Assembly (NCBI GenBank): GCA_964035545.1
Contig: CAXIUT010000274.1
Coordinates: forward strand, 1 to 31,329
From: Bugula neritina
Lineage: Eukaryota > Animalia > Bryozoa
Direction of reading: 5' to 3'
DNA: 31,329 nt
Of the stretch, positions 88 to 31,217 are shown piece after piece (within the stretch, counting starts at the first letter, position 1; the number at the start of each line of letters is the position of its first letter). The notes beneath the pieces were generated by a model. The model saw only the letters and a list, made by a program, of their open reading frames with translations, was not told the origin of the DNA and searched no databases. The position numbers and the translations under genes are program-made.

Positions 88-292
88 TGAACTAATTAAG
101 TTAATTATAAAATATATATATTAGTATTAGGCGCCAGTAAGTATAAAATAACAATGAAAAATATCATATCATCAAAAATAAATTAGTGCATCATAGTTAC
201 TTAAAGTAGCACTTCGTATTTTCTTAACAATTAATGATAATATAAAATATTATAGTTAAAAGCATTAAATCAACTAATTTACTTATTAACGA

Positions 293-967
293 TCATCCCA
301 ATCTAAATGGATTGAAATCAATAGAATTGCTATAAGGCAAATAAGAATTTTATCTTCTCCAATTTTCATTTCCCCAACTTTGAAAAGGATATAACTGATT
401 CACTTCTAAACTCCTTCCATACTATTACTCAGTCATAATAATAGTCTGAATACCAGCTATACTAGTCTGACATCCTTGTTCTTGTTGCTGTTTTTCAACT
501 TTAAAGCTTTATATATTTTCTTGTATTTCGGGTTCATTCAGGGAAATACTTGAGTTGGACTGATAATCTTTAAGGGCAGAAAGAAATGAAATTCCAGACA
601 ATTCTAATTTGTTTTTTTAGTTTTTAATGATTTTATATGGATACTTATATATTTTTTCATACTTCTGATGATGACTACGACATTGGATGTCGGTTTTTGA
701 TTTCACAAAAGTACACATTTCCTTAAAAAAGTTGTTAGAACTACATTAATCATATTATTACTGTCTAATACCTTTCACTTTTGCTTTTTCTTTGTTGAGT
801 TATAGAAAAATAAGGTACAATAGATGCTACTGATCAGTCCAAACTCGGTTTTTCCAACTAATTGGTTAATTATCTTTATTTTTTGATTTTAAACCTTTTA
901 CCTCCTTGAAATCTACTCCAAGATTAGAGATCTGGTCTTAATTATTAGATTATTGATGAGATTCCAT
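293..967 (-). CDS. Myb-like (SHAQKY-class) DNA-binding protein, ~217-224 aa
   Basis: With TAR=Glu, open from ATG 967 to TGA 293: ...WKNRVWTDQEHLLYLIFLE...FFKEMCTFVKSKTDIQCRSHHQKYEK, matching WTxxEH...QxRSHxQK. Candidate in-frame 21-nt intron at 741-761. Confidence 0.88.
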
Positions 968-1340
968 AGGTTTTTTGTTGTTATAACTTAAACTTAAAAT
1001 ATCAAAATACTAATTTAATTAAACTAGTTAAACATTTACAGGTAACAAATTACTTTAAAGAAGAATAAATATTAGATAAGAGTCTATATTTCAATCACAT
1101 TCTTTTAGTTTGAATCATTCGAATCCCTAGTATCTAATTTATCTTTGAACTTCTAAAAAACTATTAATAACCTATTCCAGTAATAAATTCAAAATTTTAT
1201 CTTATAAAAATTCATTGAATAAGTCTATCATTTTTATAGCAATAGCTATGATTATCATTGTTTTACCCCTTTAAATCTAGTGAATTGAAAATAAATAGAT
1301 AAATATCATAATTATATTATTTTGAATATTTGATTCAATT

Positions 1341-2524
1341 ATGACTTACCACCAAAAAGACAGCTAAATGTAACCCATCAAACAGACCTAACAATTTTAA
1401 TAAAAACAATCAAAATCATATCTAGATCCAAATAAAAAACTTCTCTCCTCAAACATCAAAACAATCGCCACAGCAATCCTCATCATAGTATTGATAGTAA
1501 TGTCAATACAAATATACAAACTAAAATAAAATATCACAAAAACAAACAAAGAAATCCTACAAGTATCATACTCAATAACACAGCTACAATCAAATCAATA
1601 CGTCTACAATGGCATCAATGTCAACGGAAAACATCTGCTCACAGAATAACACGATCACCCTCAACTGACTTTTCCATATCCAACAATAGGCATCTCCAAT
1701 CCAGGCGACACCTACAACAACACCTTCGTCAAAGATAAATAATTTTATTAATTCGATTAAAGATTAATGGAAATATTCAAACCCTACAACGTATTTCAAT
1801 GTCTATCCAGGACACAGATTGCTAGTACGAAAGAATGGGTTCATAGCACGATGGAGGTTACATCGTTTGCAATAACTATATGAAAAAAGCAAAGGCTATG
1901 ATAAATTTTGGAATAAATGCTGAGGATTCATTCGGATGCTAAGTATCGCATAAATATGATATTGTCAACCATCAATACGACTGCTCAGTAGAACATGCTC
2001 CATCATGCAAATATGGAACTAAAAATAATCTATTCATGAAAGTATGTTCAGGCGATATCACTTAAATCACATAGAAATACACCTTCCAAACCTTCAAAGA
2101 TATCATCGATAGCAAACAACTCGCCAACAAACATATCGTTCTTAAAATAGATAATGATGGAGGATAATATCCCACTCTTAGAAGCTTACCTGTTTAGTAT
2201 CTCAAAAATATCGATCAAATTTTTTATTAGTTCCATCTCAACTATACCAAACCATAGACTTGGGGAGATCTTAAAATATTCTAAACCCTAGCATAACACT
2301 TTTATAGTGTCAATTTCCATATGAACAACTATGGCTGCTATAAATACTTTCCCTTCTTCTCTAGTGCCAATATGAGAAAAATGCCTTCCTGGGCATTCGA
2401 AGGAACTCTCGTCAATAAGCAACTTCTACAAATAAAGTAACCCACCAGATCTTTCGTTGAACATAAACTAAATAACATCAATGCACCAACGCTTAAAGAT
2501 TGCCAAATCATAAACAAGGAATGA
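1341..2524 (+). CDS. Type II membrane SAM-dependent methyltransferase (METTL24/Methyltransf_22/FkbM-like), 387 aa
   Basis: N-terminal TM helix (IATAILIIVLIVMSIQIY); motifs RMGSEHDGGYIVC, INFGINAEDSFG, HQYDC, VLKIDNDGGEY, QIFYEFH, FHMNNYG. A 20-nt intron at 1791-1810 restores the frame. Confidence 0.85.
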
Positions 2525-2680
2525 TCTTATTAGCAATTGTATCTAAACAACTATTTTGGATATTAAATACTTTAATATATTAAATCTTCATTTATAAAAT
2601 GTAAAATGACATTTCTAAATGACATGACTGATAGTTATGATTTGTAAAAATAAAAATATGATTAAATAAAGATAATTTTA

Positions 2681-3942
2681 TCATTTTTTGCATTCTTGAG
2701 GACCCTCTCCAACATCAGTCAACCAAATTCCTCGAGGATTCATTTTCATACCCTTGAATTCACTAAATCCATGTTCTTATTTATCTGTTTTATTTAGAAG
2801 ATCCTTTGCCTTCTTATTGAGTATTTCTTCTTGCTTTCCAAAGATCTCAAAAAGATACTTTAAAACTTTATTAACCATATTTTAATGGACAAACAAAAAA
2901 GCATGAGGTCCAGCATCAAAAGTGTAAGCCACTTTAGTTTATTTGCTTTACTTATTGATAATATGGTCTACTATATAGATAATCTGTTTTGAAAACTAAT
3001 TTAAATAGAATAAAGGAGGATAGCTGTCCAAACAAACAGCATGAAAATTATTACTATCCTAAATACAAAACTATTTACCTTAATAATAATTTATGCTAAT
3101 TTACTAAACTATTAATACTATCTTCCTATATCTTTGTTCTCTTTCTTTCGTACTTAGTTAATAGAATCAATAGATTGTACTATCTTTTAAATTCTTTAAT
3201 TGGCTATTTAATTCCGATATTTTATAAATTAACTAGTCTATTTCGATATTCTCATCCCGTTCGATGAAGATATATCTTTCTCTTTATTCTCAGTCACCAA
3301 AGCTATTATTCTAATAAACTACAATTCCTTTGAATCTTTTATTGATTGACTTATACACTTATTACTCATCTACTCTAACTACTATCTGGTTTCTTTATAC
3401 CCAGGAGTCAAATATTTTTTGTCGACTCCTTTCCACTCAACCAGCCCACCATACAGAGAACGAGTAGCACTACCAGATCCAGTTCTGGCAACAATAGACA
3501 ATTATTGTTGGGTAAAAATGGAGCCAAATAGATTGTTGAGGGTGACAGCCAGACATGAAAATCCAGAAGCAGAAGATGCCATACCAGATGCAGAAGGAAA
3601 GGAGTTAACCGATTATATCTTAAAATGATAGGAACTCCATTCTTAATCACTAAAATTTCTATATTTTTATTGCCACCTCACTTTATCTCTAACCATATTT
3701 AAGACTGAAACCATTCTATTGGTCATACTTTTTTGAAGTCCATTAAGAATAAAGATATCATTTTTGTATTATTTTGAAAAATGACAAGAAGTGGTCGATG
3801 ATAAATCATCACTATTGATAGTCAAACCGATAGATGAATTATAAGGAATCATTCTTTACTAGTTGTACTTTCCCCAGTATTTTATCAATGCTATATTTGG
3901 ACTTGACCTGTATTTTGCAGAATTCATCACCAATTTTATCAT
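2681..3942 (-). CDS. MVD: Diphosphomevalonate decarboxylase (GHMP family), 413 aa
   Basis: SPNIALIKYWGK, ESVNSFPSASGMASSASGF, ARTGSGSATRSLYGG, DSNNFHAVCLDSYPP, VAYTFDAGPHA, TDVGEGP. 20-nt intron at 3059-3078. Alternative in-frame ATG at 3927. Confidence 0.97.
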
Positions 3943-4099: not shown

Positions 4100-4636
4100 A
4101 TGAAAAAAAACTATATAACTTTCAACAAAAACTACATAACTATCAACAAAAACGTCCAAGCACCTCGTAGTCCCCTCATAGACAACCGTCCTCAATCAAA
4201 ATCTTTAAAACTAAAGAACAAATCATCAACAAAAAATCAATCCCTAAAATAGAAATCTAAAAACCCCTCAATAAAAACAAAACAATCAAGAAGATAGATA
4301 TCATCATCATAAAAAACAATAAAATCAAAAACAGATATAAAACCTTTAAAAAAAGATAATAAAATATCAATATCCATAGACGATAAAGACTAAAACAAAA
4401 TCAACATATATACTGGTAAATAAATTCATTCGACTTTTATATCTGACCTAACAGATAAAAGTTTTTAGAATATAACTAATTTAAAATTAAATATTTTTCA
4501 ATATATATTAAAAAATCGTTTTGTTCAAGATAAAAATTTTGATAATATCTACGATCTGCTCGAAGAAAGATTCCCATAGCATCATCAAACCATCCAGTAA
4601 ATCATGGTAGAAATAGTAACAACCTTAGACTCATGA
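4100..4636 (+). CDS. Hypothetical protein, 178 aa (basic Lys/Ser-rich N-terminus, helical C-terminus)
   Basis: Uninterrupted ATG-to-TGA frame of 179 codons under TAR=Glu; C-terminus LKLNIFQYILKNRFVQDKNFDNIYDLLEERFPEH looks like amphipathic helices. No family confidently recognised. Confidence 0.7.
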
Positions 4637-4644
4637 TTGTATTT

Positions 4645-4773
4645 ATAATTAATATCTAAAAATAATCATTCATATGTTTAATAGTAATCATTAATATGTC
4701 TAATAGTAATCATATATATGTTAATAATAGTCATAAATAAGTAAATTAATAATAATTAATATCTAAAAATAAT
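4645..4773. repeat. 22-bp perfect direct repeats enclosing three degenerate ~20-nt tandem units
   Basis: ATAATTAATATCTAAAAATAAT at 4645-4666 and 4752-4773; interior units ATATGTTTAATAGTAATCAT / ATATGTCTAATAGTAATCAT / ATATGTTAATAATAGTCAT. Confidence 0.85.
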
Positions 4774-4784: not shown

Positions 4785-5219
4785 ATGTAAAAGTAATAAA
4801 ACAACAATATCACCATTCAATAAGCACAGTAAAAGCTAAGATTGTTTGTTAAATAAAGATAATGGTAAAAATTCCATACCCCCAGAAATCTACTTCTCGC
4901 TCTAGTTGGATAAGTCGGATAAATATCAGAAATATTCCAATGGAAAGGATAAATATCCAATGGATTAACATAGTTTTCAAAATAAGAAAAAGTACATGTA
5001 GGATAAGAACTAGCTGATGTCCTAGCCTATCTTGTCAGATTGTCAGATGTATGTGGAATTGATCTTGGATAGGCATTTTTGAATAAGATGTAAAAAAATG
5101 AAAAGAAGTATCCGAAAGATCTAGTCCGTGGAAGTTCAAAAAAATATACATAATATAAAGAGAACTACAAGTAGAGATAAAAAGATAACTAAAACAGATA
5201 AGACAATAATAACAATTGA
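4785..5219 (+). CDS. DCTPP1: dCTP pyrophosphatase 1 (MazG-like all-alpha NTP pyrophosphatase), 144 aa
   Basis: FVKEREWEKFHTPRNLLLALVGEVGEISEIFQWKGE...HVGEELADVLAYLVRLSDVCGIDLG...KKYP...GSSKKYTEY; conserved Glu residues are TAA-encoded. Confidence 0.96.
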
Positions 5220-5239
5220 TTTGTATTTATTGTTGATAA

Positions 5240-8200
5240 TCATTTCCCATACGCTCTCAAACTCTTCAACTCGTTCTACAAATGATCCTGCTTCTCCTTT
5301 ATCTCTCCTTTCACCTGCTTCACATTCGAAAACGAACTCTACCAATTGATAGCTTCAATGCTTCTGAAATATCTATCGTTGTAGTGGTATTTCACATTGT
5401 TAGGATGGATTTTTAAATTAGAAATTATATTTGGAAGGAAGTAGTTGTTGAAGTTTATTGGTTTAGAAAAAGAATGACTAGGATATTGATTTATTTGTAA
5501 GGCCTATTTACTATATTGAGTGTAGTTTCGACCTTGCACAGATGATTCGACAGCTTTCCAGTTTTTTAGTTATCTAACTTGCTCCTCAGTAAGATATTCC
5601 TCACCTGAATAACTATATTTATTACCATTTCCATCAGGATAAATAACGAATAACCTTGGAATAATAGAATTTTGAGGTTGAGGTAAAGAATAATTTTGTT
5701 ATGGCACATGAATGCCAGATCCATATTAATTTTTATTCTAACCTGAATCTTTTATATTAGATGAAGCAGCTATTTCGTTTTTACTATTCCCATCAACTAT
5801 CTAATAGAATAATTACTTCTCACTTTAAAATAATTAGATTCTTTATCTTTAGTCGACACCTCTCCTTACCTCAAATTGACATCATAAACTCCCTCTTGAT
5901 GATTATCTATCTAGGTAAACAACTGGCTCCATCTTTCTTTCAACTATTCCTCTTAACAACTTTAAACCTTATTTATAAACGTAATCAACCCCTTTTCATT
6001 CACTTTTATCATAGAACTATCAGGATATGCAACCAGGACAACAGGTTAGTCAGTAACAACACCCTAACGATCAATTCTTTCAGTATATCTATGACAACTA
6101 AAACATGGATGGTATAATTCATAAAGCTAGCCATTGTAGCTTCGATCAAGTAAGTCAGAATAACCAATTTTAGAAAATTATGATCCGCAACCAATGATAT
6201 TAGGTTCTTTATTATGACCAAGATTTACACGGATTATAAAATTAGAATGATTCACTATTTAGAATTTATCAGAACCAAACCATCTGATAATAGTACCATC
6301 TTTAAACATTATTAACCTGTCATTATTTTTATATTGAACAAAAGTAGTTGAATCCTCTCGAATTCTAATCTTCTTATCTGTCTCAACTGTACACTCCACC
6401 TTCATCTCCCTTTATTCACCCTAACTCGATATCATATTGTGCTTGATATGAGTCCAAACACCAAAACTCAAGACAGATACATCTCCATTCGGATAAAATA
6501 TCTATATATTGCCATTTTTCAACCTTTTAGTGATCTATCCTCTAGATCCAAAACTTCTACTCTCCTCAAGTTCATTACTACACCAATATATAGTAGGATT
6601 AGGATCAAATGCTATATTAAATTACTTATTTTGAAAAGATAAACGAACAGATTGACTATCTTATTAGGTGTAAACTGATGTTTTTAAACTATTTTAATAT
6701 TTATAAAAAAGATTGCCTCTAGATATCTCATGTAAACCATATTATATATTGTCTTTATTCAAAGTTATTAGTCTTTTCTCAGTATCTCCCATGCAATATA
6801 AATTTTATGTTATTATAGTATTATCTGTAGGCATCATCTTCTTACCCAGTATCTTAAGATTACCTGTTTGTTTCCAATTATAATCCCAAAAAGTTTTATT
6901 TTATTTTTCTTATCTGAAATACTAATTCCAAAATTGAAAGTTAGGCAGTACTTTCCAATCAAAGATATGATTTTGGTAAAGAAATCTTCCTGGAGGATTG
7001 ACTCTAGCCAAAATAAGTAAATTATATCCATCATCACTACATTCTCCATAATATACCTTAGGATCATATTCTAATTATTGATTGATTCTTGAGTTTAGGT
7101 CTTTACATTACAATTTTTATACATATTTTCTATTATCAAAAGAGTAGAATATTCTGTTAGCCAGCTTATTGCTCAACTATGTGAACTGTTCAAGTTTATA
7201 TTAATATTCTAATCCATGCTAGAAAGGAGATTTTTTAAGAATAGAAGAAAGAGGAATAGATGAAGGCATTTTTTATGCTTTGAATTTTACTTTGAAATTA
7301 AGTTCATTTGATGTTGCAGATTCCTTTATTTATGGCAATTTATCTTTAAGATTAGCCAAGTTTATTTTGTTAGTAGGTTTGTTTTTATATTTATTCCATA
7401 ACTATGAACCTATTTCTTTGATACTTGTTCTCTTCTCATTGCTTTCTGTTGATATACTAATAGAATCAGCCAAATCATCAAGCATCTTATAGTATATGCT
7501 CATACTATTGGCTTTTTTCTTCTGACTAGATATTCTTTTATAGGTTGAAAGATCACTTTTAATGTTCTAAGGAAAACTTTCATACTTCCTCTAAATAACC
7601 TCTTCCACAATCTATGTTACAGGAGGACCTGTTTCTTTCTTCCCTTTCTTGTCCTCTTTTTTCTATTCGACAACAACTTCTTTCTTAATTGTCTACTTTA
7701 TAGTTGGAACCATTGGTGCTACAGTTTGTTCTTTAAACCAATTTCCATAAACTTACTTATTTAAAGATAATTGACAAAGTTTTTTAAATAATTATGATAA
7801 AAATTGTTGACAATCTTCTTCTGGATGCTGAAGATCTTTAAGAAAAGGAACTTCGATAATAATACTATTTTACAAAGAACTTTCTTAAGACATTCTTAAC
7901 TTTTTAATAGTTTGAATTATCTCCTTTTTAGAAGCTTTTTACTCTACATTTTCTTTTCTTTAATTTTTTTATTGTTCAGGTGATGTTTTATTGGCCTCAT
8001 CAGGAACATTTTAACTATTAAGCAAATCCTATTTTGGCATACCTGATCCTTCTTTTACTTTTTATTATACCCATACAATCACCTCAGGTTTAAGACCTCC
8101 CTTAATAGCTGTCTACAGACACTATTTATCAAGAGGAATATCCAGATAAAATAAAAATTCTGTAACTGCCTTCTAGAAATCAAATTATATTGGTTTTTAT

Positions 8201-8564: not shown

Positions 8565-8608
8565 CAGTTTCCTTTTTGAATTATAATTATAAATATAGGA
8601 TATAAAAA

Positions 8609-10260
8609 TCACACCTCTATCTTCTCACAACCAAACATATAAAACCCCTACTTAGAATAACTGCCATAAAGACAACAAGGATATTCACTTTATTTGACCT
8701 ATAAAGATCGCTTTATACCATCAAAAGAACCAGCTTTGATAGTTGTTCCTTTGTCACTAGTTGCCATCAATCCCACAATCACATTATTCTTGAAATAACA
8801 TTGAAATTGTTTGAAATAATCATCTTATTCAAGGATTATTAACTTTCCATTGACATTTTTTTCATTTTATTTTTTATATTTATGTGAAATTCCTTGTTTT
8901 TCAGTATCATTCACTAGATAAGTAGCTTAAAATCCTAAAAATTGATTTTTATTCTAGAAAAAAGTAAGACCAACAATAAATGCCTCTCTCTGACCTATTA
9001 TTTTTCGATCATTAGCAATACTATACTTCTTATTATGCTTACCAACCTAAGTACTCTAAAAACAATGCTAAAATTAGTCATTTTTATTAACATTTGTTTC
9101 ATTTATGCTCTAATTTTTGAACAATATCTTCAATTGATTTAAACTGATCTTTTTCTTTCTTTACTGGAATGTCTACTAGCATTCTTATAACTAATAAATC
9201 AATTATTACAGCTATAGAGTAGATTGAATCGACCTATTTTCAGCCTCTTCCTTTTCCATTTCGAGCTGCATCACCTTTTTGTTCAAATCTTTTTGAGTCT
9301 TTCTCAAATTCATGATATCACTCTTCAACTTTTGAAACCCTTTCTTGCTCCTATCTTTAATATTCTCAGTTACTCGTGATAAAGAAGCTTAGTTTTGATT
9401 GACTTTCTCTCCAGTTTCGAAATATACCTTCAAAGAAAACAATTGGTTCTTATCATATCCCTTACTCAATAATTTCTGCTATAATTTGAATATCTTCTGA
9501 TTCTAAGCTTCATAACTTCCATCCTGACCTCGCTCTTACTCTTCCTCTAATTTCTGTTGATAAGTTTTTACTTCTTTATACAATCGACTCGTTTGATTAG
9601 CATATTCTGTTTTGATATGTCCGTCTTTAAGTAACTTGATGTATTCGTTTGATTGCCTTTTAGATTAACTGATTTATACTTCTAACTTTCTGACTATTTC
9701 TTGCCTTCGACCAAGAATGGTCTCAATGGACCTGGTTCTAAAAGTGTTTGAGCTCTTACTTATCGACGATTGTACCTTCATGTTAGTATACTTTTTATCG
9801 ATTCAAGATCAACTCTCGAAATTGACTCAACTCTTCCTCTACTCTCTCCAACTCCTTTCTCAAACTTTTATAATCAAGTTAAGGTATTTTTTTAATTTTC
9901 TTATTCCCACAAGTATTCAAAATATCTTCGACTCTATCCACCTCTTTTTGCAATATCCTATTTTTCTCTCCTAATTCTTAAATCATTGATTTTCTAACTA
10001 ACAAAAAAATGATACTTTCTTATCGAAGATGGAGATTAGGCATATCTCTGATAACTTTAATTGATATTGATTGTATTATAGCTGTTATTTACGTTTATAT
10101 TTTTATTATTTGGGACGGGAGTATTGATAGGAGGAAGAAATTAATTTTATTAACTATTAAATTATGAAATATCGAGACGATAACGATTGTCTTTAGGAAG
10201 GTTTTTTAATTTTTTAGGAGAAGAACTGTTTAAAGTTCTTAGTGTCCTGTGGGTTGACAT
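8609..10260 (-). CDS. Coiled-coil protein with C-terminal jacalin-like (beta-prism) domain, 535 aa
   Basis: Long heptad-rich region, then IVGLTFFENKNQFLGFEATY...LEEDDYFKQFQCYFKNNVIVGLMATSDKGTTIKAG...CLYGSYSKEGFYMFG. 22-nt introns at 9994-10015 and 9738-9759 are needed for the frame. Confidence 0.72.
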
Positions 10261-10525: not shown

Positions 10526-12497
10526 ATGAAGAAAGCAGCTAAAAAAACATCAACCAAGATGGTTGTTGATTAATACTAAAAATACTTCAAAGGAAACGAC
10601 TACTGCAAACCATAAAAATTCGTATAAATTAATAAAATGCATCCCTGCAATCAACTCTATCATTAATAACTTAGATAAAAACCCAATAAAATCAATCATA
10701 AATATCAGCATGACTATTTATAGGAGCAATAACATTAAAAATAATAGAAAAATGTATATATTTCTATAATTTAGATAAATTAGCACTTCTATGATATTAA
10801 AAGTGATGATGATGACGATCATTTTTCAATGTTACTTTCACAACAAAGAAAAAACAATCGTTCTTCAAGAAATAAATCAAAAAATAATGCTTTTCCTTAA
10901 AAAAAATAAGATATTAGATTTCCACTTAAAAGTTATAAATAAAGTTAGTATTTCCCACATAACTAATATGAAACTTCATATATGTAGTAAATCCCTATCA
11001 AACAAAAAAGACCACTATCTTCAGCAGTCAATAAAAATCAAAGATCAATTCCACAAAAAACATAAAAATAAAAATAACCTAAACTAAAAAAGACCCTTTC
11101 TACTTCAAAATTTAAATAAGATAAGAAAAGAGTCAATAACTCATCTCATAAAGATAAAAATAACTTACAATCTCTCCATATTAAAGATCTAAAAAATATA
11201 ACTATGAAAAGACCATTGAATAGTCAATACCATGAACCTCTTTTAAATAAAATTAAAAAGAAAAATGTAAATTTTGCATCAAAAAATCTCAGAATCGAAG
11301 ATTTTCAAAAAGGACCTACAAATAATAAAAACAATAACGTAGCTTAAAAAATATACTTCAAAAAATAATAGTAAAAACCCTCAAAGCATAAAGATTATAG
11401 AATATATTAAGAATAAAAAAGATAAGAACCAAGAATAATCAAATAAAGAAGATAAAAACAACATTCTTAGAGATCAGAAGGATAATCCAATCGATATAAA
11501 AACATAAAAATGAATAACAAATAACCTATCTTTAAAGAATAAAGATAATAAAGACTACCATCAAGAAATAGAAGATAAAATATCGTTCATAATCATCCCA
11601 ATAGATCAAAATAACATTAACACAGAAATCAAAGGTAAAAACAATATTAATAAAGAAGATAAAGAGGTCAAGCAAGACACCAAGAACCATAATCTATTCG
11701 AAGAAGATAGCCAAATCGAAGAATTCCAAGAAATAGATAAGAATAGCATATTAGAAATAGAGAAGAATAAAGACCTCAAAGAAATAGATAATAACCAAGA
11801 GGAAATAAAGAAAGATAGCAATAAAGACCCAGATTAAATAGAGAACAAGAAAGACCTAGAGTTAATAGAGAACAAGAGCGACCTAGAGTCAATAGATAAC
11901 AATAAAGACCACAAAGAAATAGATAACATGAACAAAATCAAGGTAGAAACCATAGAAACCCTAGAAATCAGTCATCAAATTCAAGAAGATCTCCCAACCC
12001 AGGTCATTTCTTCAATTTTGTATCAAACAGTATAAACGAACAATTATCACTCATGAAGTACTAATCATTTAACTCAGTAGTCAATTTAGCATGATGTCAA
12101 ATGTCTTTTAAAACTTCTCTAACTTTGTAAACATCAACATCGATACCCAAGGAAACCACTTCCATATGAGTTCAAACATGTAATCCTCAGACGACTACAA
12201 CTCATAAACTTCATAATCATTTTCATCAGACTATGACTAATACTACGAAGATGATTCCTAACCAGAAGGCCTAGATGAAGAACAACTGAACCAAATCAAA
12301 AACACCATTTACGTAGCTCCAGAACAAGGTGGCATTCAGTACCTTTGATATAAAGTAGATGTACGATTTGTCTGATTGATTTGAAGACAGGCGAATAGGT
12401 AAAGAAGTTATATTGTGAGCATACTTTCCATAGCGATTGTATAGATTAGTGGTTAAAAAGGAAAAATCATTGTCCTTTATGTCGAGATAGACAATGA
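10526..12497 (+). CDS. RING-H2 E3 ubiquitin ligase-like protein with long low-complexity N-terminus, ~636-643 aa
   Basis: C-terminal GLDEEQLNQI...CTICLIDLKTGEEVKKLYCEHTFHSDCIDEWLKRKNHCPLCR. 20-nt introns at 12058-12077 and 12339-12358; candidate 21-nt intron at 10754-10774. Confidence 0.9.
11810..11917 (+). repeat. Four 27-nt coding tandem repeats (consensus NREQERPRV) inside the RING protein
   Basis: Units start at 11810, 11837, 11864 and 11891; a more degenerate copy lies upstream at about 11754-11790. Confidence 0.85.
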
Positions 12498-12591
12498 TAA
12501 ATGATAATCTATGAGATGTAGAATATCAGTAATATAAATTCATTTTTATGATGGATATTTTCTTCCATCGATAGAAGTTTATAATATATCA

Positions 12592-14508: not shown

Positions 14509-14552
14509 TCTTCATTATTTTTTAACATTATTAATTATAGAACAATATATTA

Positions 14553-15998: not shown

Positions 15999-16021
15999 TC
16001 TTCATAATTTTAACATAAATA

Positions 16022-16567: not shown

Positions 16568-16596
16568 GATTAATTATAATTATGATAACTATACAA

Positions 16597-19500
16597 TCAA
16601 ATAGGTATTTGCGTAAAATACTTATTTATATTTTTAAGCATTCTCGCTTTATAGACAGGCGCCTCAACCACAGTAGCTGCAGGTCCTTTCCACATATTCT
16701 ACACCCACTATCCAGTCCCATACTCACGCATATAATCCACCACTCCGATCTGAAAACGGTTCCCATCAAGATAGTACTCTTCAGAATTTTAAATCTCTAT
16801 CACCAAAATCAATGAATAATCAATGACGTTATTTTAACAAAGATAATCAACTGTTGCAGATAGATCTTTGATAACATTGTCTTTGCAAAATATTGGTTCA
16901 CTAAAACGATCTATCAAAAAGTTGATATCAAGAGGTATTACTGGAGGCTTTGAAAATCTACGAGTCACTGAGCCCTTGAAATCAAATAAATACCAATCCT
17001 TCATCCCGAAAAATAAGTTTTACATCACGAAGTAATAATCTGTAGTCATGCCTCTCTCTACGATAAAAGCACCATAAATAGGAGTCAACACACTACCTTC
17101 ATGCAAATGAGTAAAATATTTAGGCAAAAACTTTCTAAAAGTCATAAACTCTCCTTTTTGGACCTTTTTGATAACCAAAAGATCATTATATGATCTCATA
17201 AACGATGAACCTGACTTTCCACCTGTAGCCATCCAAGCATCAGCACCAGCAATAGAACTAATAAACAACTCTATCGGAATATTATTCTTTCTTCTCAAGA
17301 CCTAAAACTCATTAGGAAATAACAAAGTAATACTCAAACTTAAACTAGAAGCTTATTTTTTTATTTTGTTCTGTACATCAAATTTTTTTTATTGAAATTA
17401 AAGCAAAGCGATCAACTTCTTAAAATCTTATGTGTCCATCAATAACTGCTCAGCTTATAGATATTTTGTTATTTTCACAGTTAATTCATTGTGAAATTTA
17501 AAATCTTATAAACAGTCTTTATGTTCTTTGCTGTTCAATGCAGCCACAATCAAACTTTGAGGCTTTGTTACAAAACAGGGAATAAACTAAAAATAACCTT
17601 GGTTAAATTTTAATGCAGATGAGATATACTTAAAAGTTTTATGAACCTCTTCTTCAGCTATTTTAGATGATTTTCTAGCCAAAATGTTTGATTCTGTTTT
17701 CCTATCATTTCTAGAAATAACCTGTTCTTCTTTACTAGCATAAGGCTGAAGCCATCCATAATCAATTACATCAGGATTAGTCGATTCAGCTGTCTGATAA
17801 TTGGAATATAACTCACTTTTAGATATCTAACTTGTTGAAAGGTCACTTTAGCATGACATGCTATTAGTTTCACTTATATATTCATTGATATCCAGATCTT
17901 CAAGCAAAAGATCATTATCGAAATCTTTAGCCATGTATTTCTGGTCAAGTTCTCTCTTTTTAACTGATTTTTTCACCTCATTGATAATTACATAACATCT
18001 TCGTAGTAAACTCATAAAGACAAACGATATTTTCAAAGCTTCAAGAAAAGAACCAATTCTTTTATTATTCAACATCAACTGAGCAATATTGTTCACCTTT
18101 GATACCTCTTACACCAACTCAGGTATGATAATATCAATGCATTGAGCTTGAGATAATCTAACATCAGGACTGCCCACAATCGAATGCCGAGCTTTAATGA
18201 AACTTGATTTAGGGTTTTTAATAATCGAATCAAATTTTGAATTTTTGGATAGTTCTGCAATAGTCTTTATTTATTCAAAAAGATAGTCCATCAACCTATC
18301 GATTTTACTCGCCTATAAAAGACTAGATCCAATTATCGCCCTTTGTTCCTTATTTTTCAAAAACATCTACCTTCCAGTTGCAGTCAACACACATTGTCTA
18401 TTCAAAGTATACTTTCCCACATAAAATTTAACAGATTTATCTCCAAGTTCAAATACTCTCACCTTTTTCGAGTGCTGACATATTATACTTTTATTTTTAA
18501 TTGATGTCTTCTTGCCATTGTTCTATCTGATGATCGTTTCTGTTGATCCTTTGAACATATTTTGAAGAAAGTTCAAAGTACTAAACTATAAATCTTACTT
18601 ATAGACATTTTGTCTTGTAGAAATAGGTTATTGACAATCCAAACACTCAATCAAACACTTTAATTTGTCTCTAGAAGGATATTTTTAAAGATAAGAAAAT
18701 ATCATTTCCATTTATTAATTTTTAACTGATTCATCTATCGAAGTAAAAGAAGAATAACAACTACTTTCGCATTATCCTTCATCAACTATCATCGACTAAG
18801 CCCAAACTCTTACATACTGGTCAGTTGAATAGTAAACATCCGAATGAAGATAGTTAGGACGACAACAAATTGAACACTTCTTATCCAATCCAGTCAACTT
18901 TTTGAGAAGATAACTACCTAAAGGAGCATCTTCTTCAGAATAAAACATTTGATGATAATCACATGATTATGAACATATTTAAGTGAAGTTAGGCCATTTA
19001 TTTTTAAACGATTTGGTTCTTCCTTTGATATATTCTTCAAGAGCACCTTTATTAACTTCAGGATAGTTCGTAAAATCGCTTTATACATAGGTTATTTGTT
19101 TATAAGTCACATATTTTTATTTAATGTAACTCAAAATATCATGATGAAATTATGCATAAAAACTAGAAAACATCTATGGATTGTTCAAATAACAATCTTT
19201 CCTCATCTGCTATGACATAGAATTTAGAATATTTTGGTCCATCTTTACCTTATAAACCTTCAACTTCATATGAGTCAGTGTCTGCAAAATAAACCTAAAC
19301 TACTTCTTAAGATTCTAAAGTAACTTCTGACTAGTATGTTTAATAATAAGAGTCAAACCTAACTCATCTTTCATAGTATGCACTTTGAAAAACTTTTTAA
19401 TTGCATTTCCTTACTTAGCTGAAGTATAAGTAGTTGAAGTGATCTTTTTGATAAAACCTGTTATCTGTTTTTAAGGATATGAGTATACTTTGCCTATGTT

Positions 19501-20652: not shown

Positions 20653-23264
20653 ATGAACCCCTTCAGACATTCGCATTGTTTCAGCAAATGCCAACTAGAA
20701 CTCATCATTGACACCTACCTCAGCCAAGGACCCTACTACAACATCCTCCTCAAAGCCCTACAACTCAACATGCAAAAATATTAACAACTTTCTGATCCTC
20801 ATCGCAATGATAAACCTCACCCCATCCGCATCTACGCCAGAGACCATCAATGCAACAAAAATATAGTTGATTAAGATATCTAAATGTTAAATTCTTAAAC
20901 AAAAAAAGATACAAAAACTACCCATTCATCATCCAGTCTTAAATATTACTATCTCTATCCTCTAGAATATGTGATATAAATATTAGAAAGCGCACAGTTC
21001 TACAGTCTCCTACCCAGAGATATCATTATTAATCAAGTACTGACAGGCACTAACTTACAAATCATCATAGAAACATTAACTATCGTCAGTGAAGATATGT
21101 GCAAAAAGATAAGAATGACAATTGCAGGAAAAGAACTAGTCAACCCTTCAACTCATCAAGATAAAATCATTTAAGAGGCAAAAGAAATTAAATATCAATA
21201 ACCTCGTTTCAGTAAATAAATCAACTAGAAAAGTTTTGTAGATATCGAAGTTGATTAAGATGAAGATTAAGATTAAGATGAAGAAAGTAGAATAGATATT
21301 GAGCAATCAAGTAGGTTTATAAAAAAGTAAATATCAGGAACAAATAGATATATTAATATTGATAGGTAAATAGATTAAAAATCATGTAGGTTTTGTCAAG
21401 GATATCTCATCTATTTATATTAAACCATCGGATAAAACCCTCTAGACTAAGATATTAATCGTTTATCACCATAAACTATGAGATGTTTAGGTCTAATATC
21501 AAAAGCTGTAGCCTATTTTACCCTATATCTAACATAAACTAACAAAACACATGTCCCCAACGATATCAATATCATCAATAGAGTTCTCAATTCGCTAGGT
21601 TTAGTTATTACTGAATAGATATTCGCATCAGAACTAAATCCTAAAGTTATCCGGCCTCCAAAAGTTTCACTTAAAAAGCCTTCTAACTTGATATAGTAAT
21701 TATAGCCTTATTTCAAAAGTATAGAAAAGAAGAAGAATAATAGTTAATATTATGAGATATCTTAATTATTAAGAATGATCATTTATTCTCCAACATGCTA
21801 AGAAGTGAAATAGCAGTTAAGAATAAGTAGAATATAAACTTTTTAGAAATAAACTATCAGTAAAAATTATGATCATTAAGAAAAAGCACAACAACTTTTG
21901 AAAAAATAATTAAAAGATATGAAATAATACTAAAAATAAAGACTTATCATAGCTTCAAATACAGTAAATAATAAACAAATCTATCGACAACTAGGATTTC
22001 CAGAATAAGTAATTCCCAATCAACAACAAACTAAACCTAATAACTACAATGCTATGAATTCATCTAAACTCAATAATTCTTCTAAATTGTATGAAAGAAA
22101 TCAAAGTAATTATCAACGTTTAAGTCCTAGAAACAATAAAAAATAGAATAACTTTTTAGCTATGGAAATGTCTAATTCTTTTATGAAAAATTCAATTGAT
22201 GAAAAAAAAATGAAGAAAAAAGGTAATAAAAATAAAAATACTAATTAAAGAAAAAATACATCAAAAAAATAAGATAATATTTTCTCATAATTTCAAAATT
22301 CAGGTTTATTTGCAGTAAGCAATGCCATAAAAAACAATCTTATCAAAAGAGCATAAAGCCAAAACACACTAACTACTTCAGTTGACATCACTTAAAATCC
22401 ACAAAAATACTATTCCGATCAAATAGATGAATAAAATTAGTTACCTGATCATCAATTTAGAAAAATCCTTTACAATTCTTATTCAAAGAAGTATAACATG
22501 AATTCAAAAGCTGATAATAATTTTGCTGGAACTTCAAATAACGTCAATCCTCAAGCAATTCTATCTTCAAGTATGAAGCTACAAACTAAGAAAAGCAATG
22601 GATATACTAATAGTTCTTTATCTCATTTTATTGGCAGAAAACAAGAACAAGAACAAATGGATTGCATCTAAAGAAAATAAAAATAATTATTCAATAAACA
22701 ACTTCTCAATGGCTAGTTCATCAAAAGTATAACATATTATATTTAGATGAAGTATATCAAGAAATAAATAAAGGAGCAGCATAGATATTTACAGATTATA
22801 CCAGTACTATGAGTCTAATGGACAGTTTAAGACTATTCAAAAGCGGAGGTATGATTTTGATTAATATAGGACCAATATATACATAATATAACACTAAAAC
22901 ACAATTATCTACTCCTAATTCAATAAAACCAAAATAAAAAATAATATACTAAAATAGTAAAAAGTATAATCATACTGGTATAATCAGAAATTAAAAATAC
23001 AACAAATCCATTAAAACTGAACTCATCAATCACAGACAATAGTTTTTACAAATCTACTAAAAATAAAATTAGAGCAAATCAAGATTACTAAGAGGACATA
23101 AAAAAGATAAAAGCAGCTAAAATAAACCTAATAATAAAAATTATAAATAACTATATTAAATATAACTACAAAAAGCCATCAACAATAGAAAAAGTTTATA
23201 AATGGAATAAAATTAATCAACATAATGGAGTCAAAATGATTTCTATTAAAGTTTATGTCAGTGA
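20653..23264 (+). CDS. Hypothetical protein, ~856-863 aa
   Basis: About 690 codons are open before the first intron (22727-22746, 20 nt); candidate 21-nt intron at 22849-22869. Contains an acidic DEDEDEDEDEE tract and a CxxC. No family recognised. Confidence 0.75.
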
Positions 23265-23335
23265 TAATATTAATATCATAGCTTATTAACATATCATATT
23301 GTATTTGTTATTTATATTAAATTAACTTGATATCT

Positions 23336-24043
23336 ATGTTTGAAGGACTACTTTCCAGCAGTATCAAAAATATCAGAGAACTCGATGAGATTAACAAACA
23401 CGATCGATTCTATCTTCGCTACTATCTCACAGTCAAAAGAGCACGAGCCCTAAATTAAAAAATATATGGAGACAAAAAAGATAAATCAGGATAATAACTA
23501 AAAACAGCACATCCTCTCAGAATCGCTTGCCTTACAGAATAAATAAAAAATCAAAAAATATCAGATTACCACATGACCTGGCTACTAGGGCTGCTTCATG
23601 ACTCGAAATAAGATAATTTACTCACCTACACAGAACAAATCGATGAAGTTCTTATGGATTTAAGACCAGAATAAAAATAAAAGTTGATGAATTATATCGA
23701 TCAACTCACTTCAGAATAATGGAAGTCAAAAGGATAAAAGAAAGCTGATCAAATACAAAAGATGGAAATATTGGAATTGATTCCCAGTTGGATTAGAGTT
23801 TTTGATAAGTATGATAATTGTCGTCGTTTTAGAAAGAATCCAGTAGGAAATTCTAAAAAGAAAATCGATGGATATTTATCAGTTGCCTATCTTTGCTACA
23901 AAAGAGCATGTTAACGATATGAGTAAATATAGAAGAATTTACAACATTATATTCATTAGTTTTATCATGATATTTTGAAAGATATCGGAGGATTACCTAA
24001 AATCAAGGCTACAGCCTAGGCTTACATTGAATAGAATAAGTGA
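23336..24043 (+). CDS. MESH1/HDDC3-like stand-alone RelA/SpoT-type HD hydrolase, 235 aa
   Basis: YGDKKDKSGEELKTAHPLRIA...LGLLHDSKEDN...QLTSEEWKSKGEKKADQ...IRVFDKYDNCRR parallels the HP, LHDxxED, LT and DKxxN motifs of RSH hydrolase domains. Confidence 0.85.
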
Positions 24044-24115
24044 TTGTAGTTAGTCGTATTATTATAAAAAAATAATGATATTAAAAATAATTATTTACTA
24101 TTATAAATTATTTAA

Positions 24116-25270
24116 TCATGAAACTTTGAACACTTCATATTCTTTAACTAAAAAACTGCTATTATTTGAGCCTGTGAATAATTAATAGCAATCTTATTTT
24201 TAAAATTTATAATTACGATAGAATAAAAAGATATTACCTGAAGGTTATTGATGGCATTTATCAGCAATAAATAAATCTCCATGACCAAAGGAAGGACCAT
24301 ACCTTGACGAATTATATATAATACAATTTGATTGAATACATGGTATTTTTTATTTCATATCTAATTGCAAAGTAAATGCCTTTTTCGCTTAATCACAAAC
24401 CATATTGTCTTTTTTAGCTTCGTTCCAAGCATACTATGTAAATCCACCGATAGTTTTTCCTTTCTGAGTTCTTATTAGTGTAAGAGTATTAGTAAAATGT
24501 CCACATTTTTCATGGAAAGCTTGAGCTTTAAATCCATTTTAAGATGCTCTAAAAAGCAATTATATTTTATTTGGATAATTAAGAGTTTTTAACAAAAAAT
24601 CTACCTTTTATTCATTTAAAGATTTTAGAATAGTTGAATCTATTTATAATTTTTTATTTTTATTAGAAAAAGGCTTATTTATTTTTTAAATATTATGTTC
24701 TTTTTAAATCTATGCAAAAAATTCAAATAATCTCTTTTTTAAGAATAGCATTTTATCAAATAAAGCTTATAAATCTTTTTAATAATTTTATAACAACTTC
24801 GATGCATTTTATTTTGCTTTTTAGTTATACTTTTGTAAAGAAGTATAAAGTTAATTAACCTATTTTCCTCTAATATATTCTTTATTCTCTTTTTTATAAA
24901 CTTCTTGAATAAATTGTTACTATTCTCTCCCGAAGGCATATTTTCTGATGAATAATTGTCCTTTTTCTTAGAACTATTTCATCATATGATTTTCCATCTG
25001 AGATGCACTAAGAACAAATTATTTTAAATGATCAACCTTCTGATTAAAATGTTGAGTTAGAGATTTGAATTTTTTAGATGAACAGTCTACATGAACCTCA
25101 CAATATTTACAATCATCCTCATCACACATCAAAGATGGACTTTTACATGATATATTGGCACATATCCTGGAGATTTTGTTGCTTCCAGAACAGTAGAGGT
25201 CGCAGTACCCTACTTTGTATTGGCTAAGAAAGGCCTCAACCTAGGCATCTGTATGACATTATGTCCTCAT
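24116..25270 (-). CDS. TLDc-domain protein with N-terminal Cys/His-rich (B-box-like) region and coiled coil, 384 aa
   Basis: LLFRASENGFKAQAFHEKCG...TLTLIRTQKGKTIGGFT...YGPSFGHGDLFIAD...FLVKEYEVFKV; N-terminal CDLYC...ICANISC...LMCDEDDCKYCEVHVDC. Confidence 0.93.
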
Positions 25271-25857: not shown

Positions 25858-26530
25858 CATTTTCAATCTTTAACAAGCAAATTCATTCTCCCCTAACGAT
25901 GACTACTTCCTTGACCTCGACTTCTTCTAGAAAGAAGAATCAACTCATCCAGCCAAAGAAGACCCTCCCAACCTCCAAAGGACCCTCACTGATCAATTCA
26001 ATGAGGAACCCTATGTTGAACCCTTCATGGCTTTTCCCCTTCCTCCCCAACCAGAATAAGAATTAGAAGACAACCCATTCAACAGATAAGAAATCAACCT
26101 CTTTCCTGAAGAACCTTCTCTATTCAGAGATTAAATTTCAAGCATTCCTTCAGTGAGCAAAGAGGAAGACAAAAAAGCTCCAGCCAAGAGCATAGCAACC
26201 AAAAATGTATGCTTCAACATCTGTCAAAAAACCATCAAAGTGATTCAAAAACAAACCTACTCAAAAAAACTTAATGACATTTGTGACTTCTACGGAGCCA
26301 ATGAAGAAGAATTCATTGACCATATCATCCACATAAAGAAAGAATTCACTGGTCCAAAAGCTCTTGCTAAATACGTATAAAGCGGAGCTATCTTTTCTCA
26401 AGTTTTCAGAGAGTTCATGAGATGGTTTCTAAAAGAGAAATATCTAAGACATTGTCTGCTTGGTGACATGAAGGACAAAGAGGCCTACATCAAATACAAA
26501 AACGAAGTGGTCCTTGTCATCCTTGAATGA
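25835..26530 (+). CDS. Ciliate-type hypothetical protein with acidic/aromatic Pro-rich N-terminus and basic helical C-terminus (possible transcription regulator), 231 aa
   Basis: 232-codon frame; C-terminus TKNVCFNICQKTIK...VFREFMRWFLKEKYLRHCLLGDMKDKEAYIKYKN. The function is inferred from composition only. Confidence 0.8.
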
Positions 26531-26577
26531 TCATAAATTATATTTAATTCTTATGCCTCAATATTGAACATTATTAA

Positions 26578-29500
26578 TCATTTTTGATAGTTGATAATGA
26601 TCAACTCAGACTTCAACTCTTGCATGATCGTATTCCACACATAATTGCCCATTTCAACCAATACTTCTGTTTCCTAATCATCATAGAAAAGCCATCTTTC
26701 TTAGGATTAAACTAACTAAGAATATTATATTATTTACTTCGTTTGCAAGCATTCGAGATAGCCTATCTTCTCGAATTTGCTCGATATAGGAGTCAGAAAT
26801 CTTAGCTGAACCAACCAAACTTTACTATTTATCAGCTAAAAGACCACAAACATAAGAACATTGCTCAGCTACTTTATCAACACTTTTCTTCAACTTTTAT
26901 TCAAGTTGATTTTCAGTCAAAGTTCTTGAAAAAGATGCACACTGCTTCCAAGGAAAAGGAGCTCCCCAAATACCATAAGGTCTTTCATGATCTAAAAATT
27001 CATTCATTGAATCAAAAAGAGCTCGATTGTGAATATGCAAAATAGTTTTAAGAAAGCCAACTCTTGCTTATTATTTATCAGCATCATCATAATATTGTTA
27101 GAATTAGAGAGTGGGAAGCAAACTTTGCTGGAACTTTTAAAATGCAGTCACTGGTACTATAAAAGTTGGAGCCTATTCTTCCTATTACTTGATTTAATAA
27201 TCCCCTTCATGCATATACCTCAACATTTATAAAGCACTTGGACCCATTGGATTACTCAAATTATTTAAAGCTGTTTTATGTGTACCTATATTATAAATAA
27301 ATTACGAAGCAAAAAGCTCATAAATCTTTTCAAATATTCTTTAATAACATTCAAATTAGTCTTAACTCCTTTCTTCTTTTTAGCCTGATTCTGTGCCCGA
27401 GTAACAAAACCATTTATTGATTTCATGATCTTGTTTTAAGAACATGGTTATTGATATAGTTCAATACATAAATCTAAGAAGATAAATTAGAAGATATCTT
27501 CCTTATCTTCAGCACAACAGTATTTTAGTTTTGTATCGAGATTATTAAAATCTTTATTGCTTCCAATTTATTTATTAATTATAGCAATTTATTCATCAGA
27601 ATATCCTTCTTCTTCCAAATCTCTTTATACCTCTTCATAACTAATATTATCACTTGAATCTTCACCACCGAAGTGCTAATGCTTCATCTTTAGCAATCTT
27701 TATTTAATAGCTTACATTTCTTAAGACCTTTGAAGAGATAATTCTTGACTACCTCCAAGAACTTCACTCATAGGTGATGGATGGATGTTCTACTCACTGT
27801 TTACATCTTATTAAAATTCATCGTCATAACCTTAAATATCTTCTCCTGATTTATTTGATCTTTATTTCCTTGATGGCTGTGAAATAGAAGGCTAAATACT
27901 TTCTTCTTAACTTTAACTTTAATTTTAGTTGCTTTATTGTTATTTCTTTGGAATTAAAGATTCTGCTTAAGTTGCTGCAGGTTTTCTCAAATAGGTTTAA
28001 CTCAAACACTTCATCATTTTTCCAGCTGCACTTTGCTATTAATACTTTCTAGAATGAATATTCTTATCTAAAATTCCTCTTGCTTATCGATATCCCTGCC
28101 AAATACTTTTCTTTACTTTAGATATTTCTTAAAGTTCCTTTTTAATCCATTTCAATATCCTCTATTTTTACTTTTAATACTACTTCGATGATAACTGATT
28201 AGACTATCTCTTCATCTCCAAAAATCCCAACTATTTTTATTTCTTATTTAACAAATTTTACTTCCTCTGCTTCAATGCAGTCGATATAGTTTCCAAATTC
28301 AACAGTTTAATATCTTAATTATCTTCAGTAGTATATTCTTATCTAAAAGAAGCAACATCTTAATCCTATTTTTCTTATTATTTGGCCAGAGATTCATGGT
28401 AGTACTCCTTATACAACTATTTTTATTTGTTAGAACTGTATTTACCAGTAAACTACTCATCTATTTCTTTGCTTTTACTATTTTGAACAGTTGCATCTGG
28501 AATCAAATCCCTCTGAAGATCATTTTTACTTCTCTACAAAAATGAATAAACCTAGTTCAAAACAGTCTGAGTATCAGCCTACTCACTTTTCATATTTTTC
28601 TTTATAAATTCAAGAAGATATCCCCACTTTTATATCTCCTGCTTTTTCAATTATTGTAACTTTATTCTTTCAAGTTGACTACTCAAACCTCCCCTTTCTA
28701 TTTATGATGACATAAATGGTCTCATCTTATCAACAGATATATTTGACTAAGACTATTTATTCGTATTCTAATTTTATTGAATAAATTTATTAGATACTGG
28801 CTATTATCTTTATTTCAATTTATTTTTCAATTAAGATTCAAACAAATTTTCCATTTCTTTTGATAAAACATCTCTGATGTTCTTTCTTTTTTATCTGTTT
28901 TCATTTTAAACTTCGCTTGGAAAACTTATATTCAATTCTTGTTATATCTACTCGACACCATCTCTCTTTTAAGACTGTTCACTAGCAGCCATCAACTGAA
29001 TATAAGTCTAAATCAACTGAGTTGTATCCTCTAGAACTTCAATATTGACAGCTTACTTCCTAGGCTACCCTCTTCTAGCTTTCTTTTAATAGAAGGCTAT
29101 TTCCTCAAGAAAATCAATTGAATGATCAGTCTGGATATGAATTCTTTCTCTCTTCTTTGAATAGTATGGGATTTAAGATTCTTCTATCTCGCTTCTAAGA
29201 ATCGAAGCAGTCATAGATTTTAAACTATTCAATTTGTCAACAATGACATTTTGTTGAGAAGAATCTCCTCGAATTTATTTATCTGATCTTGAAGTCAAGT
29301 TTTTCTTCTTAAGTTTTTTACGACTAGTAGAACTACTCATACTTTGTGGCACTTGTAATTGATATGGTGATTTGCCCTTACTGAAAGAAGTGCCCAATGA
29401 TCTTTTACTTAACTAACTATTCACTATCTTGTGAATTATATTCTTCAAACTATGATTGTAGTGACTCTTCTTATTACTTTTTACTTAAATAGCTGCAGAT

Positions 29501-29972
29501 TTACTTGCTCCCTCACATAAACTCTTCTTATACACTTCTCCTTAATATTTAGAATAACTTCTTTTTTTCTTAGTAGTCTAAACTTTCTTAAAAATCTGAG
29601 TCTGCATAAGTATTTTATGTTTATTTTTTTGACAAGTTTCAACATAACTAGGTCTACTTGTATTGATATCCATAGAATTTCTTTTAGACTTCCTTTTGTG
29701 TCGTATATCATCCATAGGTTGTAAATACTCAAGATCCTTATTGTATGTATTTCTGTCAGTATTAGAAGGATCAGGAGTTCGAGGGTATTGACAATTACAA
29801 ACAGTACTTTTAGGTTGGATATTATCAATATTGATTTTTTTATCTTTCACTCTAAATAATGAATCATATACTCTGGAGGCAATCCGTTACGACGACCATT
29901 GATATTAAACTAGATATTGATGTTTAAAGGATTATGTTAGTTAATCTGTTGATTGTACTTACTTTCACTCAT
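26578..29972 (-). CDS. Coiled-coil protein with C-terminal CEP350/DUF4378-like domain (probable basal-body protein), ~1110 aa
   Basis: C-terminus QIREDRLSRMLANELVESEERWLFYDDEETEVLVEMGNYVWNTIMQE resembles the CEP350 C-terminal W..YD.E motif. Introns at 29852-29871, 27286-27305 (20 nt) and 26716-26737 (22 nt) give a spliced length of 3333 nt. The central part was not read codon by codon. Confidence 0.8.
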
Positions 29973-30125
29973 GGCTGTTATATTATCATTATATCTCACT
30001 TTGTCAAATAACTCCAAATATTACACAAAATCACTTTGAATTTAAAAAACTAAAAAAATAACATGGAACAAAAAAGACAATAAGAAATAAAATTAAAGAA
30101 TGTTTTATGATATTGATATACAAGA

Positions 30126-31217
30126 TCAATGAAGAGCTTGCTGAAGATAACGACGATATGTTTGAGTTAATGGAGAACTATTACCTAGTTATTTGAAAAT
30201 TGAAAGCATTTCTTTGTTAGCTTTTTTATCTTACCAGTTTTTATTGGCTTTGATAATAGTCAAAAGGGTCTACAAACACTATTCTACCATCTAATTCTAT
30301 CGATAATACTGAGAAGCCTCATATTTTAAACTTAAATTATCTGGCTCTGCCTATAGTTTTTTCTTCCAAGTAACTACTTCGCTATTTTATTCTTTTTCTT
30401 TCTAAAAAATTTAACAGGTTCGACATAGATGCCCATATAACTATGCAAACTATGGTTTTTATATATAAAAGACCTAATTTTGTTTCAGTACCTCTACAAG
30501 AGCTTTCAGTTGAGCCATCTTTCCAGACTACGAATAAGAACAAGCAAGAAATATATCCCCCACTAACTTGTACTCCTGAGGCACCTTTGAGTATTTTATG
30601 CCTACTAGCACCTTCTAAGCACCTTAATAGTCTTTATCATTGAGTAATATTTTTGCTTGTTATAAAGCTTGACCCACCTACTCTCGTTCTTTATCTCCTT
30701 GCGAAGCTTTTCCTGCGCTTTAAAGAAATTTATCAAGGTTTTAATTTGAGATTTACCCACTAAATGCATCTATTGCCTTTCCACCATAAACCATAAAAAC
30801 AGTTGGAACTGCTTTTATTTGAAAGGCTTGAGCTATTTTTCCAAACTTATCGATATTAATTTTTAAAAGTTTAAGTTTTCCTTGAGAATTTTTAACTTTT
30901 TGTTCAAGCATTGGTGTCAACTTTTTACAAGGAGCGCACCAATCAGCATAAAAATCGATTAATAGTGTTTATTTAGTGGTAGAAATGATCTCCTGCCAAT
31001 CTTAGTATCTTTCTAACTCCATTATTTATTCAATATTTTTTGCATAAAATTACTTGGCTTCTTGTTTTATTCGATTCAATTCCTCTTCAGTTGGTGTCTT
31101 CTTATGCTAGCTAAACGAGGCAAGATATGGTTTGAGCAAAGATGAAGTATTAATCCATTTTGTATTATTTTTGACGATATTGGGTAGCAATCTAGTGAAT
31201 CTTCTGATATTGAACAT
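30126..31217 (-). CDS. CnoX/YbbN-like thioredoxin-TPR chaperedoxin with mitochondrial-type presequence, 363 aa
   Basis: MFNIRRFTRLL... presequence; IDFYADWCAPCKKLTPMLE...FQIKAVPTV...IDAFSG; TPR tail EAEPDNLSLKY...LLTIIKANKNWEDKKA...LGNSSPLTQTYRRYLQQALH. Confidence 0.9.

Follow-up and report, generated by a model that had tools for sequence, protein, structure and literature searches.

The stretch of DNA analysed here, hereafter the window, is a contig of 31,329 bases (CAXIUT010000274.1; C283 in the 321-contig, 216 Mb animal assembly GCA_964035545.1 of Bugula neritina), and the subject of this text is the base that directly follows the stop codon (position +4) in the genes of the ciliate to which it belongs. 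The window has a guanine plus cytosine (G+C) content of 28.5% and carries telomere repeat arrays at both ends, (CCCCAA)13 at 6..83 on the left and (GGGGTT)14 at 31243..31326 on the right; it is therefore a complete macronuclear chromosome of 31.3 kilobases (kb), with telomeres of the G4T2 type and 18 genes. The large contigs of the assembly use the standard genetic code, and more than 100 small contigs hold kinase genes rich in in-frame TAA and TAG. In total, about 231-234 kb of DNA of this organism were analysed, namely the window, 200 kb of a second contig (C66) and a small set of loci; no tRNA genes were found in the 231 kb examined.

With TGA as the sole stop, open reading frames (ORFs) of at least 120 amino acids (aa) in the window add up to 22,648 aa, compared with 122 aa under the standard stops. 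Every gene of the window holds TAA or TAG, and homology work was done with stop-free pieces (Arf and a fragment of RNR1) and with motifs recognized by eye. In RNR1, which lies on a second contig, 22 TAA/TAG codons were aligned with 72 standard-code homologues, and six near-invariant glutamate columns carry TAA or TAG, at least three for each codon. The code read from these alignments is of the peritrich type, with UAA and UAG as glutamate codons and UGA as the only stop, and the guess of a peritrich code made in the first-pass annotation is thus supported by the placement of both codons on conserved glutamate columns. The introns are nearly all exactly 20 nucleotides (nt) long, begin with GTA and end with TAG or AAG. 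Their position 15 is always an A, which is likely to be the branch point; a minor class measures 22-23 nt. Among the 20-nt introns of the window are those at 1791-1810, 5797-5816, 8247-8266, 12339-12358, 22727-22746, 27286-27305 and 29852-29871. By its code and intron type, this ciliate would be placed with the peritrichs.

Gene ends were predicted on both strands with our own gene finder, which scores frames by codon log-odds, recognizes starts, stops and 20-nt GT..AG introns and makes no use of the +4 base; the resulting gene models come from sequence only, and among sequencing runs recorded as RNA none was found to contain this organism. This blind procedure predicted 18 genes in the window and returned exactly 16 of the 18 stops listed in the first-pass annotation. 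On the forward strand, the TGA and the T that follows it occupy 2522..2525 (gene 1341-2524, with one 20-nt intron), 4634..4637 (gene 4100-4636), 5217..5220 (a MazG/dCTP-pyrophosphatase-like gene at 4674-5219, whose stop faces the convergent stop 5240 at 20 nt), 14506..14509 (gene 12592-14508), 15996..15999 (gene 14553-15998, with the convergent stop 16022 at 23 nt), 23262..23265 (gene 20770-23264), 24041..24044 (gene 23336-24043) and 26528..26531 (gene 25835-26530). On the reverse strand they occupy 292..295 (gene 293-967), 2680..2683 (a diphosphomevalonate decarboxylase-like gene at 2681-3942), 5239..5242 (a 1095-aa gene at 5240-8564 with two 20-nt introns), 8608..8611 (gene 8609-10260), 16021..16024 (gene 16022-16567), 16596..16599 (a PIKfyve-like gene with FYVE and PIP-kinase domains at 16597-20531), 24115..24118 (gene 24116-25129) and 30125..30128 (a thioredoxin-domain gene from 30126 to about 31200); the decarboxylase-like and PIKfyve-like genes were named from motifs seen by eye.

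For the two remaining stops, 12497 and 26578, manual splicing gave open ORFs that end in TGAT. At the first (12495..12498, forward strand, gene 10526-12497), the stop chosen by the gene finder, at 12348, falls within the 20-nt intron 12339-12358, and once this intron is removed the last exon encodes a canonical C-terminal RING-H2 finger and ends at 12497. At the second (26577..26580, reverse strand, gene 26578-29972), splicing of a 22-nt intron at 26716-26737 opens the frame to 26578, and the alternative stop without splicing, at 26681, is likewise TGAT. The first-pass annotation had claimed that all 18 genes, on both strands, end in TGAT, and this claim holds by direct reading of the sense strand at all 18 coordinates, by the agreement of the blind gene finder at 16 of them and by splicing at the other two; the gene ends had not been cherry-picked.

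Composition, chance and a second contig

The frequency with which T follows TGA outside annotated gene ends provides the background for this count. It is 0.29 and 0.41 in the two off frames of coding sequences (CDS), 0.43 on the CDS antisense strand and 0.47 in intergenic DNA. At an expected frequency of 0.465, 18 of 18 has a probability of 1.0e-6, so that the chance estimate of the first-pass annotation was about right. T is found at +4 in 82% of the raw predictions and in 96-100% of the best-supported sets, and its frequency after stops returns to background-like values immediately downstream, with 39-47% at +5 to +12 and 34-50% over +5 to +33, where no motif at a fixed distance was found; the last codon before the stop is somewhat A-rich. 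The constraint is confined to +4. In the paralogous genes 93-95 of C66, the T at +4 is kept and the sequence diverges from +5 onward.

The 200 kb of C66 served as a second sample. C66 is a scaffold of telomere-capped chromosomes of about 20-50 kb each, joined by runs of 200 N. TGAT ends 103 of its 135 predicted genes, 37 of the 40 genes of at least 500 aa, and 29 of 30 genes in convergent pairs with a spacer below 150 nt, a spacing that leaves no room for a missed exon; when the gene must also be at least 150 aa long, the count is 27/27 (p = 1e-9). Pooled with the window, this best class reaches 45/45 (lower 95% bound, 0.92), and the bias suspected from the window is thus borne out on another contig of the same genome. 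Telomere repeats also occur inside C66 without an N gap, at 32326-32391, 132892-132940 and 167402-167455, which points to chimeric joins or to an end-to-end assembly of separate chromosomes.

A genome of 29% G+C, in which TGAT is the commonest TGAN overall (T comes next in 42% of all TGA occurrences) and in which many non-coding ORFs delimited by TGA likewise end in TGAT, invites the reading that the pattern arose by chance, from the AT-rich composition or, as an artefact, through the choice of gene ends. This reading is hardly credible and was rejected: the same ends came out of an independent gene finder that does not use the +4 base, the probabilities against the highest background are 1e-6 in the window and 1e-9 to 1e-12 on the second contig, the adjacent positions stand at background, and the pattern recurs both in relatives and at termini fixed by homology.

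Relatives and other ciliates with UGA as the only stop

Three genes have ends that can be fixed by comparison with their homologues. The Arf gene is free of in-frame stops, encodes 180 aa, the length of its homologues, and ends in TGAT here and in three relatives. In RNR1 the conserved CGS end is followed by TGAT both here and in the relatives L048, L054 and L056, and the acidic tail of eRF1 (427 aa; L021:589-1869 on contig C314, reverse strand) is again followed by TGAT; five loci of the host (L022-L026) that the eRF1 search also returned were left out of the analysis. Beyond these termini, four contigs of relatives recognized by their Arf proteins (87-96% identical, with 20-nt introns in common) have TGAT at 5/6 (L028), 4/5 (L038), 4/4 (L039) and 4/5 (L042) stops. 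A scan of metagenomes with the RNR1 fragment yielded 80 loci, most of them from standard-code organisms and eight from ciliates with UGA as the only stop; of these eight, L048 (8/10), L054 (1/1) and L056 (8/8) were counted as relatives. Over all seven environmental or assembly contigs with 20-nt introns, TGAT ends 34 of 39 genes. L027, with an Arf 88% identical and a G+C content of 48%, was excluded, as the codon model is unsuited to it. The relatives (L028-L030, L038-L045, L048, L054 and L056) come from ENA, JGI and Logan metagenomes and from the NCBI assembly GCA_025491035.1, their RNR1 fragments are 72-76% identical where measured, and their presence in several samples means that the clade is widespread in sequenced samples.

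The first-pass annotation had pointed to Tetrahymena and Paramecium for comparison, and annotated loci around the Arf orthologue, small samples of 6-15 genes per genus, give T at 2/9 stops (with A at the other 7) in Tetrahymena thermophila and at 8/15 in Paramecium. Across three Tetrahymena assemblies the count is 6/22, at loci that are orthologous and hence not independent, and a second Paramecium locus, orthologous to the first, gives 10/14, so that Paramecium may lean toward T at +4. Ichthyophthirius has T at 2/6 and Pseudocohnilembus at 3/6. Fisher tests of these ciliates against 45/45 give p = 2e-7 to 1e-3; a near-fixed T at +4 is absent or much weaker in all four genera.

UGA-U as a probable termination signal

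The eRF1 of this ciliate reads GRASQIKD at its NIKS motif and retains YxCxxxF. The canonical protein reads GTASNIKS, and by this comparison the GTS loop of the ciliate appears one residue shorter. In cryo-electron microscopy structures of termination complexes, the mRNA is compacted so that the +4 base lies in the A site, where it stacks on 18S rRNA. When UGA enters the A site, the stop codon would pull the +4 base with it into the decoding centre, and this base could affect the success of eRF1 against near-cognate tRNAs. With a single, intrinsically leaky stop left, selection would favour the context with the least read-through, U at +4, in nearly all genes, and the divergent eRF1, with QIKD for NIKS and a shortened GTS loop, may be what shifts the optimum from a purine to U. 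We infer that the cause of the +4 U lies in the efficiency or fidelity of termination at the ribosome, and we consider it fairly likely that the working termination signal in this lineage is the tetranucleotide UGA-U. An influence of the +4 base on termination underlies the concept of the tetranucleotide stop signal (PMC4615788, PMC5829715). In yeast, read-through decreases in the order UGA-C > UGA-A > UGA-G > UGA-U, and Trp-tRNA favours UGA-A and Cys-tRNA favours UGA-G/C, neither favouring UGA-U (PMC4748822).

Several points weigh against this interpretation, the small size of the comparator samples among them. On C66, about 21-24% of the predicted stops are followed by a base other than T, and the fraction with T stays at 0.75-0.79 under varied intron penalties and length priors. 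At termini fixed by homology, the Arf of L028, a contig with 20-nt introns, has TGAA as its end and an in-frame TGATGA three codons further downstream; the RNR1 of L049 and L053, which have introns of 22-23 nt, also ends in TGAA. The functional tie to termination efficiency would be borrowed from work on yeast and mammals, and since a purine at +4 is favoured in most eukaryotes, the yeast ranking may not transfer. As the TGAA stops fixed by homology belong to two related lineages, the rule is not absolute across the clade; it is a clade trait, very strong and not absolute, and may be specific to the clade with 20-nt introns. L049 and L053 (Ga0102832_1002481 and Ga0209958_1011277) represent a UGA-only lineage in which two of three stops are TGAT.

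The exceptions on C66 are unevenly distributed. They concentrate upstream of a gene on the same strand or of a long unassigned gap, several were seen on inspection to lie within unrecognized introns or just before a change of frame, and two coincide with junctions of a telomere or of the scaffold; those adjoining the internal telomere repeats are probably not true ends. Contigs derived from reads (three public runs, X1, X2 and X5) were compared with the assembly over a test stretch of 1.4 kb; relative to the assembly they carry an additional T and lack one base, at sites at most 58 nt apart (L005:1525 and L005:1583, that is, C66 41525 and 41583). The assembly of the ciliate contigs therefore contains indel errors, which give rise to spurious stops whose +4 base is random. 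Of the exceptions on C66, some at least are artefacts of indels and missed introns.

In a genome with such short 3' regions, the stop codon might also merely overlap a TGAT that is recognized in RNA or DNA and belongs to an element for 3'-end processing or transcription termination; the first-pass annotation had raised 3'-end processing as an alternative. Five pairs of convergent stops are separated by no more than 15-26 nt (window 5220-5239 and 15999-16021; C66 13325-13339, 131439-131463 and 166561-166586), TGAT and its complement ATCA are enriched 1.2-1.7-fold in spacers, and TATCA peaks 10-40 nt downstream of stops. The spacer enrichment is modest, extends to divergent 5' spacers and slightly to CDS, and is accompanied by no extended motif and no constraint at a fixed distance past +4; moreover, a lone constrained base beside the stop is what decoding in the A site predicts and is unlike known cleavage or poly(A) signals. 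An element of this type is therefore quite unlikely to explain the pattern. Where spacers contain 3' ends, TGAA occurs at 0.46-0.69 and TGAT at 1.6 of the expected frequency, but divergent 5' spacers show no depletion of TGAA; this fits better with a preference for UGAU at any UGA that a ribosome meets in the 3' region. TATCA and ATCA are about 1.7- to 3-fold enriched at 10-40 nt after stops. Many tandem genes have only 10-60 nt from the stop to the next ATG, and, given this tight spacing and the 15-26 nt between convergent stops, the 3' untranslated regions must be extremely short or overlap the neighbouring gene.

A stricter form of the tetranucleotide signal, proposed in the first-pass annotation, holds that UGAU is obligatory, so that efficient release by eRF1 is restricted to UGA-U, the contexts UGA-A/C/G being read through or decoded as an amino acid. 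The near fixation of T at +4, the divergent eRF1 with QIKD for NIKS, the in-frame TGAT that soon follows several conserved ends without T (L028 Arf; C66 genes 4, 60 and 103) and the occasional in-frame TGA within Pfam matches on ciliate contigs all agree with it. Yet a long in-frame coding continuation follows 4 of 20 TGA-A and 9 of 121 TGA-T stops, which is within chance for tandem genes, and back-up in-frame TGAs or TGATs are no commoner after stops without T than after those with T. Over about 75,000 codons, a gene finder that permits read-through placed no more than 4-13 TGAs inside genes, and T was not depleted after these; none of five RNR1 orthologues contains an in-frame TGA. We regard obligatory UGAU as unlikely. 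Of the original proposal, the part that stands is a very strong, lineage-specific tetranucleotide preference; the recoding of UGA-A/C/G is not supported, and no excess of in-frame continuation was found after TGAs without T. If release were efficient at UGA-U only, the stop signal would consist of four bases, a single nucleotide would decide the meaning of UGA, and the other three contexts would be free for regulated read-through or use as a sense codon.

The first-pass annotation had also suggested a search for in-frame TGA not followed by T within conserved domains. The best candidate, a TGA-A in the PH-BEACH part of a BEACH gene on C66, was rejected as an assembly error: it is flanked by the two compensating indels at C66 41525 and 41583, and in the corrected frame, which is open, the TGA is out of frame. 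A search with the Pfam PH_BEACH family did not detect the BEACH gene of C66. With no excess of continuation, a clean RNR1 and an artefact at PH-BEACH, a sense reading of UGA was rejected for the 231 kb, in which no verified sense UGA was found. In-frame TGAs within Pfam matches were seen on other contigs, among them C27:44610-45089, C86:77892-78701, C264:86185-86943 and C87:46367-46510; these could reflect indels in the assembly, pseudogenes or genuine sense use of TGA.

Fourth-base signals in other organisms and their bearing

The near-invariant U at +4 is far stronger than the fourth-base rules known in other eukaryotes. Eukaryotic tetranucleotide signals likewise place their bias on the base next to the stop (PMC4615788, PMC5829715), but the published biases are moderate and usually favour a purine, whereas U is near fixed here (45/45). 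The UGA-N hierarchy of yeast, with the least read-through at UGA-U (PMC4748822), offers a selective reason for gene ends in UGA-U, but yeast genes show no near-fixation of UGAU, unlike this ciliate, and the hierarchy is carried over to a UGA-only eRF1 by analogy. Among ciliates, Condylostoma and the karyorelicts share reassigned stops and very short 3' regions with the present lineage, and in both cases one may ask what marks a true stop; there, in contrast, UGA also encodes Trp, the flanking bias is weak and proximity to the poly(A) tail has been proposed as the cue (PMC4967479), and here the +4 base is strongly fixed and no verified sense UGA was found.

Published work covers tandem stops in ciliates, the weak flanking bias in Condylostoma and the narrow intron lengths of peritrich genomes. 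Our literature search brought up no description of a +4 U rule, either for peritrichs or for other ciliates, which is weak evidence, as most subscription journals were not covered. In general the fourth base is no more than a statistical tendency. A eukaryotic lineage with a near-invariant one would amount to a natural experiment on the sensing of +4 by eRF1 and the ribosome, and would reveal by what means termination is kept safe after the reassignment of two of the three stops to an amino acid. In practice, TGA followed by T is a strong cue when gene ends are called, both in the genomes of peritrichs and in animal assemblies contaminated with ciliate DNA, and false stops, which lack the T, help to flag frameshift errors.

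A +4 U preference is also known from bacteria, with the same base at the same position and with more tandem stops as a side effect (PMC6764699); the signal is read there by RF1 and RF2, not by eRF1, and the preference is strongest in highly expressed genes and not near-invariant. Back-up UGAs in UGA-only ciliates are, like the T at +4, a sign of selection against read-through, and the studies concerned treat extra in-frame stops, a text search of them returning no +4 analysis (PMC6879139, PMC10553269). In the present lineage, the immediate tandem stop TGATGA follows 9 of 147 stops with T, and an in-frame TGA lies within five codons after 22 of the 147.

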